Both the position numbers and the translations under genes were made by a program. Under the pieces are notes generated by a model, which ran no database searches, was not told the origin of the DNA, and was given only the letters and a program-made list of their open reading frames with translations. Positions 2,611 through 7,953 of a stretch of DNA of 8,829 bases are shown piece after piece (positions within the stretch are counted from its first letter, which is position 1; each line of letters starts with the position of its first letter). This DNA comes from Fonticula alba ATCC 38817. Lineage: Eukaryota > Protista > Nucleariida. Location: assembly GCA_000388065.2 (NCBI GenBank), contig KB932201.1; one strand, written 5' to 3'.

Positions 2611-2649
2611 CCGCACCCCGCCCCCCCCCAGTTCCCAGTCGCCAACATG
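2611..2649 (+). promoter_or_regulatory. Probable 5'-UTR intron acceptor(s) and Kozak-like start of RhoGDI
   Basis: C-rich tract, then CAG (ends 2631), TTCCCAG (ends 2638), then tcgccaacATG. Confidence 0.45.
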
Positions 2650-2788
2650 TCCACCGACGAGTTTGCCCCCCAGATGACCGAGGGCTACAAGACCCCCAAG
2701 GCCGTCACTCTGTCCGAGCTTCAGGACCTCGACAAGGAGGATGAGGCCATGAACAAGTGGAAGGCCTCCCTCGTCAAGGAGACCTACG
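2647..2788 (+). CDS. RDI1: RhoGDI coding exon 1 (N-terminal regulatory arm)
   Basis: ATG 2647 to TAC G, followed by donor GTGCGT at 2789. Confidence 0.93.
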
Positions 2789-3997
2789 GTGCGTGTTGGC
2801 CTTGTGCCTGACCAATGGTGTGGCTCTCTGCCCATGCTCGCACCTCCCCCTTGTCCTCTGAGCTCGCATGCTTCGCTTGCTCTCGGAGACGTGTGCATCG
2901 TGTGTTTGTGTTTGCGTGCATATGTGGAGGTGCACCAGGTGTGGTGCTACCTCCTCCCACCAAGCCAAGCGCATATCCCCAATTGGCCATGTGTTTGTCT
3001 CTGTCTTCCTGTCCTTTCCCATCTAACACGCGCGCTCATGTGCTCTCCTCTCTGCCAACCGACCCGCGCAGCTCCCGCCGACGATCCTCGCCGCGTGGTT
3101 GTCCTCTCCATGACTCTGTCTTCCCCGGACCGCCCGGACATCACCCTCGAGCTCAACTCCAGCGGTAAGTGCTGCCTGCTGCGTTCCGGCCTTCTGCTGT
3201 TATTGCTGTCCACTCGCAAAGCACCGCCACTCACTTTCCTCTGTCTTCCCTCCTCCGCACTCCCCTTCCATCGCCCGGTGTGTCCTCTCTCTCTCTCTCT
3301 CTCTCTCGTTCTCTCTCTCCTCCGGGCCACCTGCAGAGAAGGTCCAGGAGCTGAAGAAGCTCAAGACCATCATCAAGGAGGGCTCCACCTACCGCATCTC
3401 GGTCAACTTCCGCGTCCAGCACGAGATCGTCACCGGTCTCAAGTTCCTGCACGTCATCAAGCGCAAGGGCATCACTGGTGCGTCATACATTGTGCCCCTG
3501 GGGCTGCCCCGTCCTTCACTCCATCCGCCCATCCATCTCCCCCCCCCGCCCACTGCCCTGTGCATGTCTCCGTCTCTCCCTCCCTCCCTCCCTCCCTCCC
3601 TCTCTCTCTCTCCCGCCTGCGGGGAGGCAGCCAATCTGCTGCCTTTGTCGCCGGCCAGCGGGCCTCCTTCTTCCGCTCTTTTCCCCGCCTCTCTCATTAT
3701 CCTCCTCACTCACCCCCTCATCGGCCCCTCGCTTCTCTCTCTCTCTCCCCCCCCCTTCTCGCTCTCTCCTCACCCTCTCCTGGCATTGGCACTCTCGCAG
3801 TCGAGAAGATCCAGGAGATGATTGGCTCGTACGCTCCCCAGCTTGAGCCCCACACCAAGTCCTTCCACCCCGAGGAGGCCCCCTCCGGCATGATGTTCCG
3901 CGGTAACTACGTCGGTCATGCCAAGTTCACCGATGATGATGGCAACATCTACCTCGAGTGGGAGTGGCCCTTCGAGATCAAGAAGGAGTGGGAGTAA
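2647..3997 (+). CDS. RDI1: Rho GDP-dissociation inhibitor (RhoGDI), 190 aa, join(2647..2788,3072..3164,3337..3477,3801..3997)
   Basis: Spliced product MSTDEFAPQMTEGYKTPKAVTLSELQDLDKEDEAMNKWKASLVKETYAPADDPRRVVVLSMTLSSPDRPDITLELNSSEKVQELKKLKTIIKEGSTYRISVNFRVQHEIVTGLKFLHVIKRKGITVEKIQEMIGSYAPQLEPHTKSFHPEEAPSGMMFRGNYVGHAKFTDDDGNIYLEWEWPFEIKKEWE. It has the RhoGDI hallmarks LDKEDE..KWK.SL, IKEGS.YRI, EIV.GLK, GSY.P, EEAPSG..RG.Y, FTDDD and WEW..EIKK.W. Exon lengths 142+93+141+197=573 nt; three GT-AG introns; ATG context gccaacATG. The symbol is the yeast name (ARHGDI family). Confidence 0.96.
2789..3071 (+). other. RhoGDI intron 1 (283 nt, phase 1)
   Basis: GTGCGT...CTAAC...GCAG; removal restores the frame. 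Confidence 0.92.
3072..3164 (+). CDS. RDI1: RhoGDI coding exon 2
   Basis: Acceptor CAG 3069-3071 and branch-like CTAAC 3023-3027. Encodes (A)PADDPRRVVVLSMTL...LELNSS. Donor GTAAGT at 3165. Confidence 0.92.
3165..3336 (+). other. RhoGDI intron 2 (172 nt, phase 1)
   Basis: GTAAGT...(CT)n...CTGCAG. Confidence 0.92.
3285..3319. repeat. (CT)n microsatellite in RhoGDI intron 2
   Basis: Directly visible. Confidence 0.85.
3337..3477 (+). CDS. RDI1: RhoGDI coding exon 3
   Basis: Acceptor CTGCAG ending 3336 after a (CT)n tract. Encodes (E)KVQELKKLKTIIKEGSTYRISVNFRVQHEIVTGLKFLHVIKRKGIT, a frame not shown in the ORF track. Donor GTGCGT at 3478. Confidence 0.93.
3478..3800 (+). other. RhoGDI intron 3 (323 nt, phase 1)
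   Basis: GTGCGT...(CCCT)n/(CT)n...CTCGCAG. Confidence 0.92.
3572..3614. repeat. (CCCT)n/(CT)n microsatellite in RhoGDI intron 3
   Basis: Directly visible. Confidence 0.85.
3801..3997 (+). CDS. RDI1: RhoGDI coding exon 4 (C-terminal Ig-like prenyl-binding domain)
   Basis: Acceptor GCAG ending 3800. Encodes (V)EKIQEMIGSYAP...FTDDDGNIYLEWEWPFEIKKEWE, stop TAA 3995-3997. Confidence 0.95.
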
Positions 3998-4333: not shown

Positions 4334-4471
4334 ATATGTGTTGTGTGTGGCTCATGCGCCGCGCCCTCATGATCGCCTCTCTCTATTTCTTTCTCCCCCT
4401 CTCTCCCCCCTTCACCCAGCACCACCCCTTCATCACAGCGCCGCCCTCCCCTCTCCCCCCTTCTCTCCCCT

Positions 4472-4709
4472 CCCAGCCAAAACGCCACTCTGTCCCATGT
4501 CACATCCCTTGATCGATGGCTCGATTGTACTCCAGTATTGTACTCCCTGATATTGCCTTCTCTTCCCTTCCCCCCTCCCCTCCCCNNNNNNNNNNCCCAG
4601 CCAAAACGCCACTCTGTCCCATGTCACATCCCTTGATCGATGGCTCGATTGTACTCCAGTATTGTACTCCCTGATATTGCCTTCTCTTCCCTTCCCCCCT
4701 CCCCTCCCC
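4472..4709. repeat. Perfect 114-bp direct duplication (4472-4585 and 4596-4709) flanking a 10-N gap; probable assembly overlap artefact
   Basis: The two copies are identical base for base and abut the gap exactly. Confidence 0.9.
4586..4595. other. Assembly gap (10 N)
   Basis: N run. Confidence 0.99.
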
Positions 4710-4796
4710 ACAGTATTATACATATCATATTTCACTCCGTGTGTCCTTCTCTCCCTCTCACTCCCTTTCCTGTTGTCTCTCTTTGTCTCCAAATCG

Positions 4797-5190: not shown

Positions 5191-5366
5191 GTGCTCAGCA
5201 CCAAGGGGAGGGCACATGCACGCCGGAAACCTGCCAGAAACTCGGAGGCCAGGTCATGGCGGGCAATGTGACGGCCATTCGAGCAGCGACAAATATGTAC
5301 CGAGGGTGTTTCTCAATGCACCCACAGTCACACCCACTCACACATGCATACGCAAGTGGATGGGGG

Positions 5367-5393
5367 CACACACACACACACACACACGCACAC
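5367..5393. repeat. (CA)n microsatellite
   Basis: Directly visible. Confidence 0.9.
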
Positions 5394-5421
5394 CTGCATC
5401 CTCCCCTCTCTGGCTCGCACT

Positions 5422-5450
5422 TCAGCCATGCGCGCGGACAAGATCTGGAG
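5422..5450 (-). CDS. Possible alternative terminal exon of the kinase-like gene ((A)PDLVRAHG*)
   Basis: Donor GTGCGT at 5532 (phase 1), (CCT)n(CT)n tract and CTCAG acceptor ending 5451, TGA at 5422-5424. Confidence 0.4.
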
Positions 5451-5456
5451 CTGAGC

Positions 5457-5484
5457 GAGAGAGAGAGAGGAGGAGGAGGAGGAG
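5457..5484. repeat. (GA)n(GGA)n compound repeat
   Basis: Directly visible; forms a pyrimidine tract on the minus strand. Confidence 0.85.
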
Positions 5485-5500
5485 GTGGTACTTCCCCCTG

Positions 5501-5723
5501 TCAAGAATAAAAGGTGTCGGAATCCGACGCACCCCCCTCCTCGGAGGAATGCTCGCTATTGCCCTCAAGGTACCTGGAGACATACAGGGCATTGGCATAG
5601 CCGAGCGGGTCCTGATCCGGATGGGTAACTGAGCCCGGCAGGAAGGGCGGCGGCACGAGGGGCCTCACCACCGGTGGGGGAGTGGTGAAAATCTCGTGCG
5701 ACAGGATCTGAAGAGCGGTGGGT
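5501..5723 (-). CDS. Kinase-like gene exon 6 (end of kinase domain plus C-terminal tail)
   Basis: Acceptor CCCAG ending 5724 with CTAAC at 5757-5761; restores KDRPTALQILSHEIF. TGA at 5501-5503 unless a further intron at 5451-5532 is used. Confidence 0.75.
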
Positions 5724-7953
5724 CTGGGTGCAGGGAGGATGCCCATCGGACCGCAAGTTAGTTGCACGATTGGAGATGGGAAGCGGACAGGGACGCGGAT
5801 GTGGAAAGGGAGAGGCAGGGGGAAGGAGCATGGCAGCCTGGCGGGGGGCAAGAGGGCATACCTGTCCTTGGGATTGCGTGAGAGGCAGGCCACAATCAAA
5901 CGGTAGAAGGCCGGCGGGAAGCCCTCCTTCACGGTTCGCGGCAGCGGCGGGAAGGGCCGATCAAGTTTGTCGATGAAAATCTACACACAAATGGGGAAAG
6001 GTCCCGCACCCCCGAGGCAAGGTCAATACACAGCACGAAGTGCCCGCTCTCTGCAGGCAATGTAGGATCGAGGGAGGATAGTAGGCCTATCTGGAGGGGG
6101 GGGGGGGGGGGGGGGGGGGGGACGCACCTTCATCTGGGGCCAGTCGCTGTAAGGTGTGCAGCCATAGATCATCTCCAGGCAGGTGATGCCAAAGGCGTAG
6201 ATGTCTACCGCCGGGCCGTATGTCGAGTCCTGGGCAAGTAGCTCCGGCGCCATCCAGTCCGGCTCACCGATGAATGTGTGGGCCTCCGGCGAGATGGCCC
6301 CCGATGCGGCCACCGCTGGATCCCACATCTGGGCCGAGCATTGGCCTTCGGCGGCCTGTCGGGCCAGCGAGCAGAAGTACTCGGGGCGTTGTGAAAAGAG
6401 ACTCATATTGCTGAGGCCCGTCAAGCGGACCTGGCCATCTGGGTCGACAAGGATGTGCTCGGCTCGAATGTCACTGCGCAGCAGGGAGGCGTGCCGGTTA
6501 GATAGTGGCGCGAGGAGGGCGGCGGAGGGCCAAGAAGCAAGAGGAGTGGGGGAGTGGGGGGGGGGGGGAGGGCGGACGGGCGGACGCGTCCGGACGTACT
6601 TGTGGACAAGCCCGTGCGAGTGGAGATACACCATGGCACGAAGGACGGGGCGCAGCAGACATACGACAAATTGGAAGTCATTGAGCCCTGAGCCAGGCAT
6701 GTGCCCTGGCCCCGGGGCATCGTCATTGTCGCTATCCCGCGCCTCGGGGGCGGACGTGGCTGTCGTGGCAGCGGCAGCTGCTTGTGAAATGAGCCCGCTG
6801 ACCGAGCCCCCCGACATGAGGGGCATCAGCAGCCAGACACAGATGTCCCGGTCCTCTAGGGCTTCGCCAGCATCGGGCACCGGGTCGCCTTCCTCGAAAT
6901 CCCAGACAACCGGCGGGAGGGCGTCACCGGCCGACAGGTTACCAGACGAGACGGCGTCTGCACCCAGGGAATCCGCCTCCCCATCGCCATCCTCATTGGG
7001 CAGGGGATCCGCCGTGAAGGTTGCCAAGATGGGAAGAATGTGCGGATGGGAGAGGATCATCTGCCGCCAGAGGCAGATGCCGCGCTGTGTGTGCGTGCGT
7101 GTGTGTGTGTGCGCATATGAAGGAGGAAGGCAAGACAATTAGCGCTCTGCAAAGTGTGCCAAAGCCAGCCCCTGCCGAACGAAGGAGAGGCCGCACCATG
7201 GTGGCCTCCAGGCGCTCGAAGGACACGCGGATGCACTTGAGCGCAAAGAAACGGCTGGCCGTGTGCAGCGAATGCGGGCTCGGGGAGTGATGATGCCCGG
7301 AGGACGAGGCCGACGGCTGGGAGAGTTCATGCGCCGAGGTTGACTGGGAGGAGGGGACGCTGTGCGAGGAAATCAAATTCTGAAGCGCCAAATAGACAAC
7401 CACGCGGCCGGAACTGCCGTGTCCAATGGGCGTGAGGTGAATGTCGTAGTCGGCCAAAGAGGAGCAATAGGGTGGCCGCAGGTGCGCAGGGAGCCCGGCC
7501 GTGTGGATGTCACTGAGGGAGCTGACGGACAAGGACATGGGGTCTTGCCGGAGAAGATGGTTGGGAATGGGGGGAGGTGGCCGGCTGGGGGCCGGGTCCG
7601 TTGAGCCCTGTTCATGGTAGCCGTATGCGGACTGCGAAGAGCCCCGGCGGCGGAAGGGCTTGCGCTGGGTCAAGAGGAGGGTGGGGGGAGGAACAAGGGG
7701 CTAGGTCAGCAGGGCGGGAGGATGCAGGAGAGAGAGGGCGGGATGCGGCAGCGGGGGGNNNNNNNNNNNNNNNNNNNNNNNNNNNNNNNNNNNNNNNNNN
7801 NNNNNNNNNNNNNNNNNNNNNNNNNNNNNNNNNNNNNNNNNNNNNNNNNNNNNNNNNNNNNNNNNNNNNNNNNNGGGCTCGCACTCGGAATATGTCGGCA
7901 AGGCTGCGTTTCCGTTGGAGAGGGGGGGCGTTACCCGGCGTGGCGGAGGACAT
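5501..7953 (-). CDS. Ste20-family (GCK-VI FRAY/OSR1-SPAK / STLK) kinase-fold protein, probable STRAD-like pseudokinase, about 569 aa; complement(join(5501..5723,5862..5980,6128..6473,6600..7084,7197..7664,7885..7953))
   Basis: Subdomains in order after splicing: IGHGSSG (I), FALKCI (II), HPHILPILATF (IV), VWLLMPLMSGGSV (V), LRAMVYLHSHGLVHNDIRAEHIL (VI), VRLTGLS (VII), TFIGEPDWMAPE (VIII), DIYAFGITCLEM (IX), KIFIDKL (X), CLSRNPKDRPTALQILSHEIF (XI). Five GT-AG introns with compatible phases; exons sum to 1710 nt. The first exon and the C-terminus are less certain than the kinase core. Confidence 0.88.
5506..5511 (+). terminator. Candidate poly(A) signal AATAAA on +
   Basis: The only + strand AATAAA I noticed downstream of RhoGDI; it overlaps the last codons of the kinase-like gene in antisense. 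Confidence 0.25.
5724..5861 (-). other. Kinase-like gene intron 5 (138 nt, phase 2)
   Basis: GTATGC...CTAAC...CCCAG. Confidence 0.85.
5862..5980 (-). CDS. Kinase-like gene exon 5 (IFIDKLDRPFPPL...CLSRNPKD)
   Basis: Acceptor GTGTAG ending 5981; phase-2 donor GTATGC at 5861. Confidence 0.87.
5981..6127 (-). other. Kinase-like gene intron 4 (147 nt, phase 0)
   Basis: GTGCGT, C26 run, in-frame stop, TAG acceptor. Confidence 0.87.
6096..6121. repeat. G26 homopolymer in kinase intron 4
   Basis: Directly visible. Confidence 0.9.
6128..6473 (-). CDS. Kinase-like gene exon 4 (catalytic loop to subdomain IX)
   Basis: Acceptor GCAG ending 6474 with CTAAC at 6497-6501; donor GTGCGT at 6127. Confidence 0.9.
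6474..6599 (-). other. Kinase-like gene intron 3 (126 nt, phase 2)
   Basis: GTACGT...poly-C...CTAAC...GCAG; interrupts the HND codons. Confidence 0.88.
6600..7084 (-). CDS. Kinase-like gene exon 3 (alphaC to start of catalytic loop)
   Basis: Acceptor CACAG ending 7085 with CTAAT branch at 7138-7142; phase-2 donor GTACGT at 6599. Confidence 0.88.
7085..7196 (-). other. Kinase-like gene intron 2 (112 nt, phase 0)
   Basis: GTGCGG...CTAAT...(CA)n CAG. Confidence 0.85.
7197..7664 (-). CDS. Kinase-like gene exon 2 (N-terminal region, Gly loop, beta3 Lys)
   Basis: Pyrimidine tract, CTGAC and CCCAG acceptor ending 7665; in-frame TAG upstream at 7701-7703; donor GTGCGG at 7196. Confidence 0.85.
7665..7884 (-). 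other. Kinase-like gene intron 1 (contains the 116-N gap)
   Basis: GTGCGA...CTGAC...pyrimidine tract...CAG. Confidence 0.6.
7759..7874. other. Assembly gap (116 N)
   Basis: N run. Confidence 0.99.
7885..7953 (-). CDS. Kinase-like gene, putative exon 1 (MSSATPGNAPPLQRKRSLADIFR)
   Basis: gccATG at 7953 and phase-0 donor GTGCGA at 7884, matching the phase-0 acceptor at 7665. The intron spans an N gap. Confidence 0.6.

Follow-up and report, generated by a model that had tools for sequence, protein, structure and literature searches.

A candidate holomycotan counterpart of the pseudokinase STRAD in Fonticula alba

The activation of the tumour suppressor LKB1 by STRAD is the textbook example of a pseudokinase turning on a genuine kinase. 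To our knowledge, all mechanistic work on STRAD concerns animal proteins. In the literature that we searched, no description of a STRAD counterpart outside animals was found; one kinome-wide study pools STRAD with OSR1. Here we analyze a gene on the minus strand of an 8,829-nt stretch of contig KB932201.1 from Fonticula alba ATCC 38817; this whole stretch is called the window in the following. The data as a whole are best explained if the gene encodes an expressed pseudokinase of the GCK-VI group, which is the holomycotan counterpart of STRAD and acts as a scaffold for LKB1. We assign this explanation a probability of about 0.65.

STRADα carries Ser195, Lys197, His200 and GLR (residues 213-215) at the sites of the catalytic motifs, and Arg100 at the position of the VAIK Lys (PMC2686265). 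In its ATP binding site Arg215 and His200 tether the β-phosphate, while Lys197 contacts the γ-phosphate; the WEF motif is dispensable in the human trimer (PMC2686265). A preliminary description of the locus, made from the DNA alone, had compared it with the STRADα motifs HRSVKASH and LSGLR. Both are correct, according to the published residues and to the STRADα sequence from the PDB, which aligns to the Fonticula protein and includes CLQRNPDARPSA. The same description had rightly assumed a non-animal genome.

Catalytic motifs and relatives of the Fonticula protein

The gene comprises six exons (7953..5501, minus strand) and encodes 569 amino acids; the extent given for it in the preliminary description (7424..5724) was too short at both ends. 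The positions of the motifs, on the other hand, were all exact. The Gly loop GHGSSG (7424..7407) is a canonical GxGxxG sequence, and the β3 Lys in ALK (AAG, 7238..7236) is Lys166. The catalytic loop reads HNDIRAEH (6604..6455), with Asp342 at 6472-6470, Arg344, and His347 at 6457-6455; the catalytic-loop Lys is replaced by Arg and the catalytic-loop Asn by His. The DFG position is occupied by GLS (6418..6410), which is confirmed both in spliced RNA and in the public protein prediction P0002. The DFG Asp is lost, and the Fonticula protein is thus a pseudokinase under the sequence definition of the term (at least one of the VAIK Lys, the HRD Asp and the DFG Asp gone). The αC Glu is probably lost as well, with Cys at its place in Fonticula and Thr or Ser in the fungal relatives. 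We infer from the sequence that the protein would be unable to coordinate Mg-ATP in the usual way.

The match to a kinase domain is highly significant (Pfam PF00069, E 6.5e-26); when the exons were scanned one by one, exon 3 was the only one to match Pfam alone. In an AlphaFold model the pLDDT of the core exceeds 90; the four inserts and the two tails are disordered. The tail of the pseudokinase gave no Pfam match of any kind and has no CCT/OSR1_C domain (PF12202).

The motifs were also followed in transcript contigs from four runs of the year 2012 (two samples, one study), in which two thirds of the sampled words were present. These contigs align as the exon blocks 5499-5723, 5862-5982, 6132-6473, 6600-7080 and 7197-7664, with explicit GT..AG joints at 5723|5862 and 6473|6600. 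Because the contigs consist of exon blocks only, the runs hold spliced RNA, and HND and GLS belong to the mature message, in agreement with the splice form proposed earlier. No alternative form that restores HRD or DFG was seen in the contigs of the four runs.

Among 1.84 billion representative sequences the only close protein was P0002 itself. However, HND together with G[LFMVY][RH] is present in about 45 sequences, which come from two fungal phyla, Chytridiomycota and Blastocladiomycota, and from environmental samples whose clusters name no taxa. In this family the catalytic loop HND[IV]RADN replaces HRD..K..N, and G[LFMVY][RH] replaces DFG. The chytrid members come from Batrachochytrium, Spizellomyces, Chytridium, Phlyctochytrium, Polychytrium, Rhizophlyctis, Cladochytrium and others, the blastoclad members from Allomyces, Blastocladiella, Paraphysoderma, Coelomomyces and Sorochytrium. 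They are publicly named 'STE/STE20/FRAY protein kinase' or 'kinase-like domain-containing protein'. A profile of the family scores its own members at 380-546 bits and P0002 at 371 bits; plant BLUS1-type kinases follow with at most 275 bits. No member of the family has the DFG Asp, and all relatives have Gly at this position. The Asp of HND and the Lys of ALK are kept in all full-length members, be they from chytrids, blastoclads or Fonticula.

The relationship between these proteins was analyzed in a maximum likelihood tree (LG+C20, 50 sequences, 352 columns), which was computed without animal STRAD. Fonticula and the HND family form a clade with a support of 100/100. The fungal members are monophyletic (98/94), as are the blastoclads (99/96) and the chytrids (98/91) within them. 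The clade of Fonticula and the HND family joins the Fray/OSR1 kinases and is separate from GCK-III, MAP4K and PAK, again with 100/100. The branching order, with Fonticula first and then blastoclads and chytrids, is that of the species tree and fits vertical inheritance from an ancestor shared by Fonticula and the fungi. The Fonticula protein is the orthologue of the HND family in chytrids and blastoclads and its long-branch sister. As had been proposed, the family profile and the tree place both in the GCK-VI group of the STE20 kinases (OSR1/SPAK/STRAD), and not with GCK-III, PAK or MAP4K.

The gene is therefore not the lone intermediate in the loss of catalysis that the preliminary description had in mind; the protein is one fast-evolving member of a family conserved in chytrids and blastoclads. 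It is best described, as far as sequence comparison reaches, as the Fonticula member of a conserved and undescribed holomycotan family of STRAD-like GCK-VI pseudokinases. Some of its STRAD-like states are peculiar to Fonticula and separate it from its fungal relatives: the exchange of Asn for His in the catalytic loop, which is lineage-specific, the lost Arg of GLR and the canonical Gly loop. The Fray-like β5 segment is a further difference from these relatives.

Many Fray-like predictions from plants and protists (P0050, P0034, P0189, P0148, P0133 and others) read 'AGVS' for DFGVS. These seem to be products of a recurrent gene-model error, at an intron that interrupts the DFG codons, rather than genuine pseudokinases.

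Relationship to STRAD, LKB1 and MO25

With the family profile, the best PDB sequences were OSR1 (250 bits), SPAK (240) and STRADα (239), followed by MST3 (196). All three lie at least 44 bits above MST3. A control profile was built from ten active Fray-like kinases of plants and protists. It gave 432 bits for SPAK, 421 for OSR1 and about 300 for YSK1/MST3; STRADα was outside the best 60 matches and hence below 236 bits. From the control profile to the family profile, STRADα thus moves from far below the GCK-III kinases to far above them. The segment of P0002 from αE to the DFG position (residues 305-372) had STRADα as its best match among 177,635 PDB sequences (40.9 bits), and PAK5 (33) and OSR1 (32) were the next kinases. 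In the PDB search the Fonticula sequence VHNDIRAEHILVDPDGQVRLTGL.SNMSLFS aligns to a STRADα segment, and His347 aligns with the His of ASH in STRADα.

A number of residues are common to the family and STRADα and differ from those of OSR1/SPAK and of the consensus of plant and protist Fray. They include the acidic, degenerate Gly loop (GVDDIS and GFEDLM, respectively), LAR-Y/H-x-PTGEYV, HPNI-L/V-PY and LW-x-VT, as well as GLR, DIYS-x-GITA, PF-x-D and LL-x-KL. The mosaic of STRAD-like and Fray-like characters in the preliminary description is real, as judged by the PDB and profile alignments. Its interpretation as a whole is partly supported. The C-lobe segment beginning with IFIDKL, which had been matched to STRAD, is indeed there; the pattern CLxxxPxxRPxA, however, is present in OSR1 too and so is no STRAD-specific mark. 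A region-restricted search with words of DIYSVGITA gave three candidates, none of them STRAD. Compared by language-model features with 7.7 million Atlas clusters, the Spizellomyces member lies closest to 'STE20-related kinase adapter protein alpha', which is a lead only. The embedding of P0002 itself gave no information, owing to its inserts.

LKB1 and MO25, the partners expected of such a scaffold, are both encoded in the Fonticula genome. The LKB1/STK11 orthologue (L042, G000:C2:1722919-1726290, plus strand) was found by a motif scan of 64 kinase loci. The exon for its N-lobe (L042:1465-1872, ending ...GIIHR) scores 139 bits to human STK11 and 60 bits to the next kinase. An intron splits the Arg codon of its HRD motif (CG|C). 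The next exon reads DIKPGNLLL...LKISDFG...GSPAFQSPE, and the rest of the C-lobe reads N. A degenerate DNA pattern for HKD[IVM]KP had no match in the Fonticula genome because LKB1 has HRD there, with the Arg codon split. MO25 (PF08569, 154 bits) is on contig 1 (L065, G000:C1:4596200-4601200, minus strand); its last ~105 residues are readable, and ~3.7 kb upstream read N. A large cluster of similar kinase genes was also noted on contig 10, at about 300-575 kb.

In a kinome study, LKB1 is present in Allomyces, Catenaria, Piromyces, Batrachochytrium, Spizellomyces, Rozella and Fonticula and absent from Dikarya, Mucoromycota, Zoopagomycota and Microsporidia (bioRxiv 10.1101/2020.01.27.920793). The same study assigns STRAD and OSR1 to a single ancestral clade, OG099; Mucoromycota keep members of this clade without LKB1 (bioRxiv 10.1101/2020.01.27.920793). 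The LKB1-positive lineages of these tables include those that hold the HND family, and the family was not found in the fungal lineages tabulated without LKB1. On the basis of profile scores, shared motifs and the co-occurrence of LKB1 and MO25 we infer that the HND family would be the fungal-side, i.e. holomycotan, orthologue of animal STRAD. Read in this way, the family suggests that the LKB1 switch predates animals.

Several observations weigh against orthology with STRAD or against a STRAD-like role. OSR1 is slightly above STRADα for the family profile, for the Spizellomyces member and for P0002. In Foldseek the AlphaFold model returned generic STE20 matches, with TNIK and PAK4 ahead and STRADα at rank 10. 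Unlike STRADα, the Fonticula protein and all its relatives retain the Asp of HRD (Asp342 in Fonticula) and the Lys of VAIK (Lys166). Furthermore, the loss of conserved catalytic residues on both sides may account for part of the score likeness of two pseudokinase lineages. One third of the Fonticula protein is low-complexity insert, and its branch in the tree measures 2.44 substitutions per site, about eight times the median end branch. A C-terminal WEF motif is not in the Fonticula protein, and none is conserved among 25 relatives. MO25 also binds active OSR1, SPAK and MST3/4 and hence does not single out STRAD. In the Fonticula genome neither a match to OSR1_C (PF12202) nor an active GCK-VI paralogue of the OSR1/Fray type was found; the pseudokinase seems to be the sole GCK-VI gene of Fonticula and could descend from Fray instead.

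This last point speaks for the alternative that survives best, which we nevertheless regard as improbable. It holds that the HND family arose on the fungal side from the active Fray/OSR1 lineage and lost its DFG motif on its own, in convergence with STRAD. Its partner would then be a different one, such as MO25 together with a GCK-III kinase from the morphogenesis network, or a pathway of the WNK type. The slight lead of OSR1 in the scores, the public FRAY names of the relatives, the Fray-like β5 segment WLLMPLMSGGS of the Fonticula protein and the common clade OG099 point in the same direction. Many of the residues common to STRADα and foreign to Fray are, however, non-catalytic and would be hard to obtain by convergence. 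The shift of STRADα between control and family profile amounts to more than 100 bits relative to the active kinases. In addition, the family occurs in lineages that kept LKB1 and was not found in the fungal lineages tabulated without it, among which Mucoromycota keep OG099 members. If the family were an independent offshoot of Fray, pseudokinases of the GLR type would still have arisen by two convergent routes.

Still less probable is an atypical active kinase that transfers phosphate by a Mg-independent route, besides scaffolding or instead of it. The CaM-kinase domain of CASK is active without Mg and is the established precedent. The Asp and Lys retained in all full-length members leave room for a weak activity of this CASK type, and the canonical Gly loop of Fonticula and the catalytic-loop Asn of the fungal members also favour it. 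But the DFG Asp is gone in every member, the αC Glu seems to have given way to Thr/Ser in the family and probably to Cys in Fonticula, and Fonticula has neither the catalytic-loop Asn nor the catalytic Lys, which is Arg; moreover, the residues that are kept could serve ATP binding alone, as in STRADα. It is very improbable that the Fonticula copy is a decaying relic near its loss, with the long branch, the inserts and the 173 of 569 residues with pLDDT below 50 as signs of relaxed constraint, given that the 569-codon frame is intact over six exons, all introns are spliced out correctly in the RNA of both samples, APE, DIYxFG, RP-x-A and a confidently modelled core are kept, and low-complexity inserts are ordinary in the GC-rich Fonticula genome.

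Structure of the gene and the rest of the window

Wherever a spliced protein was required, we used P0002, a public prediction named 'STE/STE20 protein kinase [Fonticula alba]', in which the exons were checked as substrings. This 569-residue sequence, which came up in an exhaustive protein search, has the translations of the six exons in the right order and is identical to the gene model. All coordinates in the following description of the gene refer to the minus strand.

Exon 0 (7885..7953) starts with the ATG at 7953-7951 and has 23 codons (MSSATPG...ADIFR, residues 1-23 of P0002), followed by the donor GT at 7884-7883; a loose end of the transcript contigs past 7664 matches it. Intron 0 (7665..7884) has an assembly gap inside (N run 7759-7874), which leaves its length approximate. 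Exon 1 (7197..7664, residues 24-179) holds the low-complexity N-terminus, the Gly loop, a Ser/His-rich insert of 40 residues and Lys166. It is followed by intron 1 (7085..7196; 112 nt, GT..AG), the 3' part of which is rich in (CA)n. Here the coordinates of the transcript contigs leave exactly four exon letters (7084-7081) between the blocks. Exon 2 (6600..7084, residues 180-341) covers αC to αE with two long acidic/Ala-rich inserts and ends with LVH plus aa, the first two bases of the Asn341 codon, which intron 2 splits as aa|t.

Intron 2 (6474..6599, 126 nt; CT..AC on the plus strand, joint 6473|6600) is in frame and has no stop codon, which is why its retention was considered. All four transcript contigs remove it despite the open frame, so that retention is ruled out; it would not restore HRD anyway. 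An open reading frame from 6023 to 7138 runs through this intron, and callers based on open reading frames would add 42 false residues between the His and the Asp of the catalytic loop. A word search with the 319 residues translated from exon 2 through intron 2 into exon 3 gave only one match, in which low-complexity words were dominant.

Exon 3 (6128..6473) encodes (N)DIRAEH, GLS, a long insert in the activation segment, WMAPE (6256-6242) and DIYAFGIT. Intron 3 (5981..6127, 147 nt) has a poly-C tract at its start. Exon 4 (5862..5980) reads IFIDKL...ACLSRNPKD and covers the αG-αI region. After intron 4 (5724..5861; 138 nt, GT..AG, transcript joint 5723|5862), the coding part of exon 5 (5501..5723) contains (R)PTALQILSHEIF and then a Pro-rich acidic tail up to ...DSDTFYS, with the TGA at 5503-5501. 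The 3' untranslated region covers at least 5213..5500. One transcript record is continuous from 5723 to 5213, and there is therefore no further C-terminal exon.

The pseudokinase gene lies tail to tail with a gene for a Rho GDP-dissociation inhibitor (2640-3997, plus strand), whose last exon matches PF02115 at 90.7 bits and whose first exon begins MSTDEFAPQ.... Two near-identical stretches at 4433-4792 surround a short N run and contain open reading frames that start with MARLYSSIVLPDIAFSSLPPSPP at 4516 and 4640; this may be an assembly duplication at the gap. Positions 1-2300 have a GC content of 70-78% and include an N run near 1400-1460; both strands show long open frames, and no Pfam match was obtained in this part of the window.

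Proposed mechanism and comparison with known systems

If the protein is a STRAD counterpart, it would bind ATP without Mg, as STRAD does. His347 stands at the position of His200, the tether of the β-phosphate in STRADα, and Arg344 at that of Lys197, the contact of the γ-phosphate. The pseudokinase would take a closed, active-like shape and, together with MO25, hold LKB1 in its active conformation, without a C-terminal WEF anchor. LKB1 could thereby phosphorylate kinases of the AMPK family. The change from DFG to GLx would have happened before the animal-fungal split, and the catalytic Asp and the β3 Lys would have been lost later and only on the animal side.

A much wider scenario, which we offer tentatively and consider rather unlikely in its entirety, is that an LKB1-STRAD-MO25 module, with STRAD already in the GLx state, existed in the animal-fungal ancestor and survives outside animals only in Fonticula and zoosporic fungi. 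STRADs of the ancestral type would perhaps be weak Mg-independent kinases; metal coordination would have been lost before catalysis, the latter on the animal side, and the exchange of Asn for His would have occurred again, independently, in Fonticula.

Should the STRAD reading hold, the HND family in LKB1-keeping lineages would date the complex before the animal-fungal split. Its members are natural 'half-dead' versions, with DFG gone and Asp and Lys kept, in which the order of catalysis loss and scaffold gain can be tested. Spizellomyces can be transformed, so that the idea is testable in vivo.

In CASK, according to established knowledge, the Asp of DFG and the Asn of the catalytic loop are missing and the catalytic Asp and the β3 Lys are kept, as in Fonticula. 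CASK belongs to the CAMK group, and its homology to the Fonticula protein is one of fold only; its place here is that of a precedent for a rival mechanism. The kinases OSR1, SPAK and Fray, to which the plant BLUS1-type kinases are related, are the best overall PDB matches of the Fonticula protein. They fall in the same clade of the tree and share WMAPE and the GITA-x-E region with it, and their FFK-x-AKN sequence after the kinase domain is found in the fungal relatives as well. Unlike the Fonticula protein, they have HRD..K..N and DFG intact, a CCT/OSR1_C domain and a WNK-site context in the activation loop.

The relatives in chytrids and blastoclads (for example Spizellomyces P0171, Allomyces P0029 and Batrachochytrium P0170) resemble the Fonticula protein in HND with the following Arg, in G-L/F/M at the DFG position, in the kept Lys and in having no WEF motif. 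They differ from it in their degenerate acidic Gly loop (GGVDDIS), in having none of the Fonticula inserts, in the catalytic-loop Asn, which they keep, and in an Arg or His after GL.

STRADα and STRADβ (STLK5 and STLK6) differ from the Fonticula protein in other respects: STRADα has Lys in the catalytic loop where Fonticula has Arg, and an Arg after GL that Fonticula lacks, while the Fonticula protein has a canonical Gly loop, no WEF motif and four long inserts of low complexity. The likeness lies in a fold that is nearest to OSR1/SPAK, in the replacement of DFG by G-L-x, in SN-x-S-x-x-S after this motif, in the His at the position of the catalytic-loop Asn, and in the presence of LKB1 and MO25 in the same genome.

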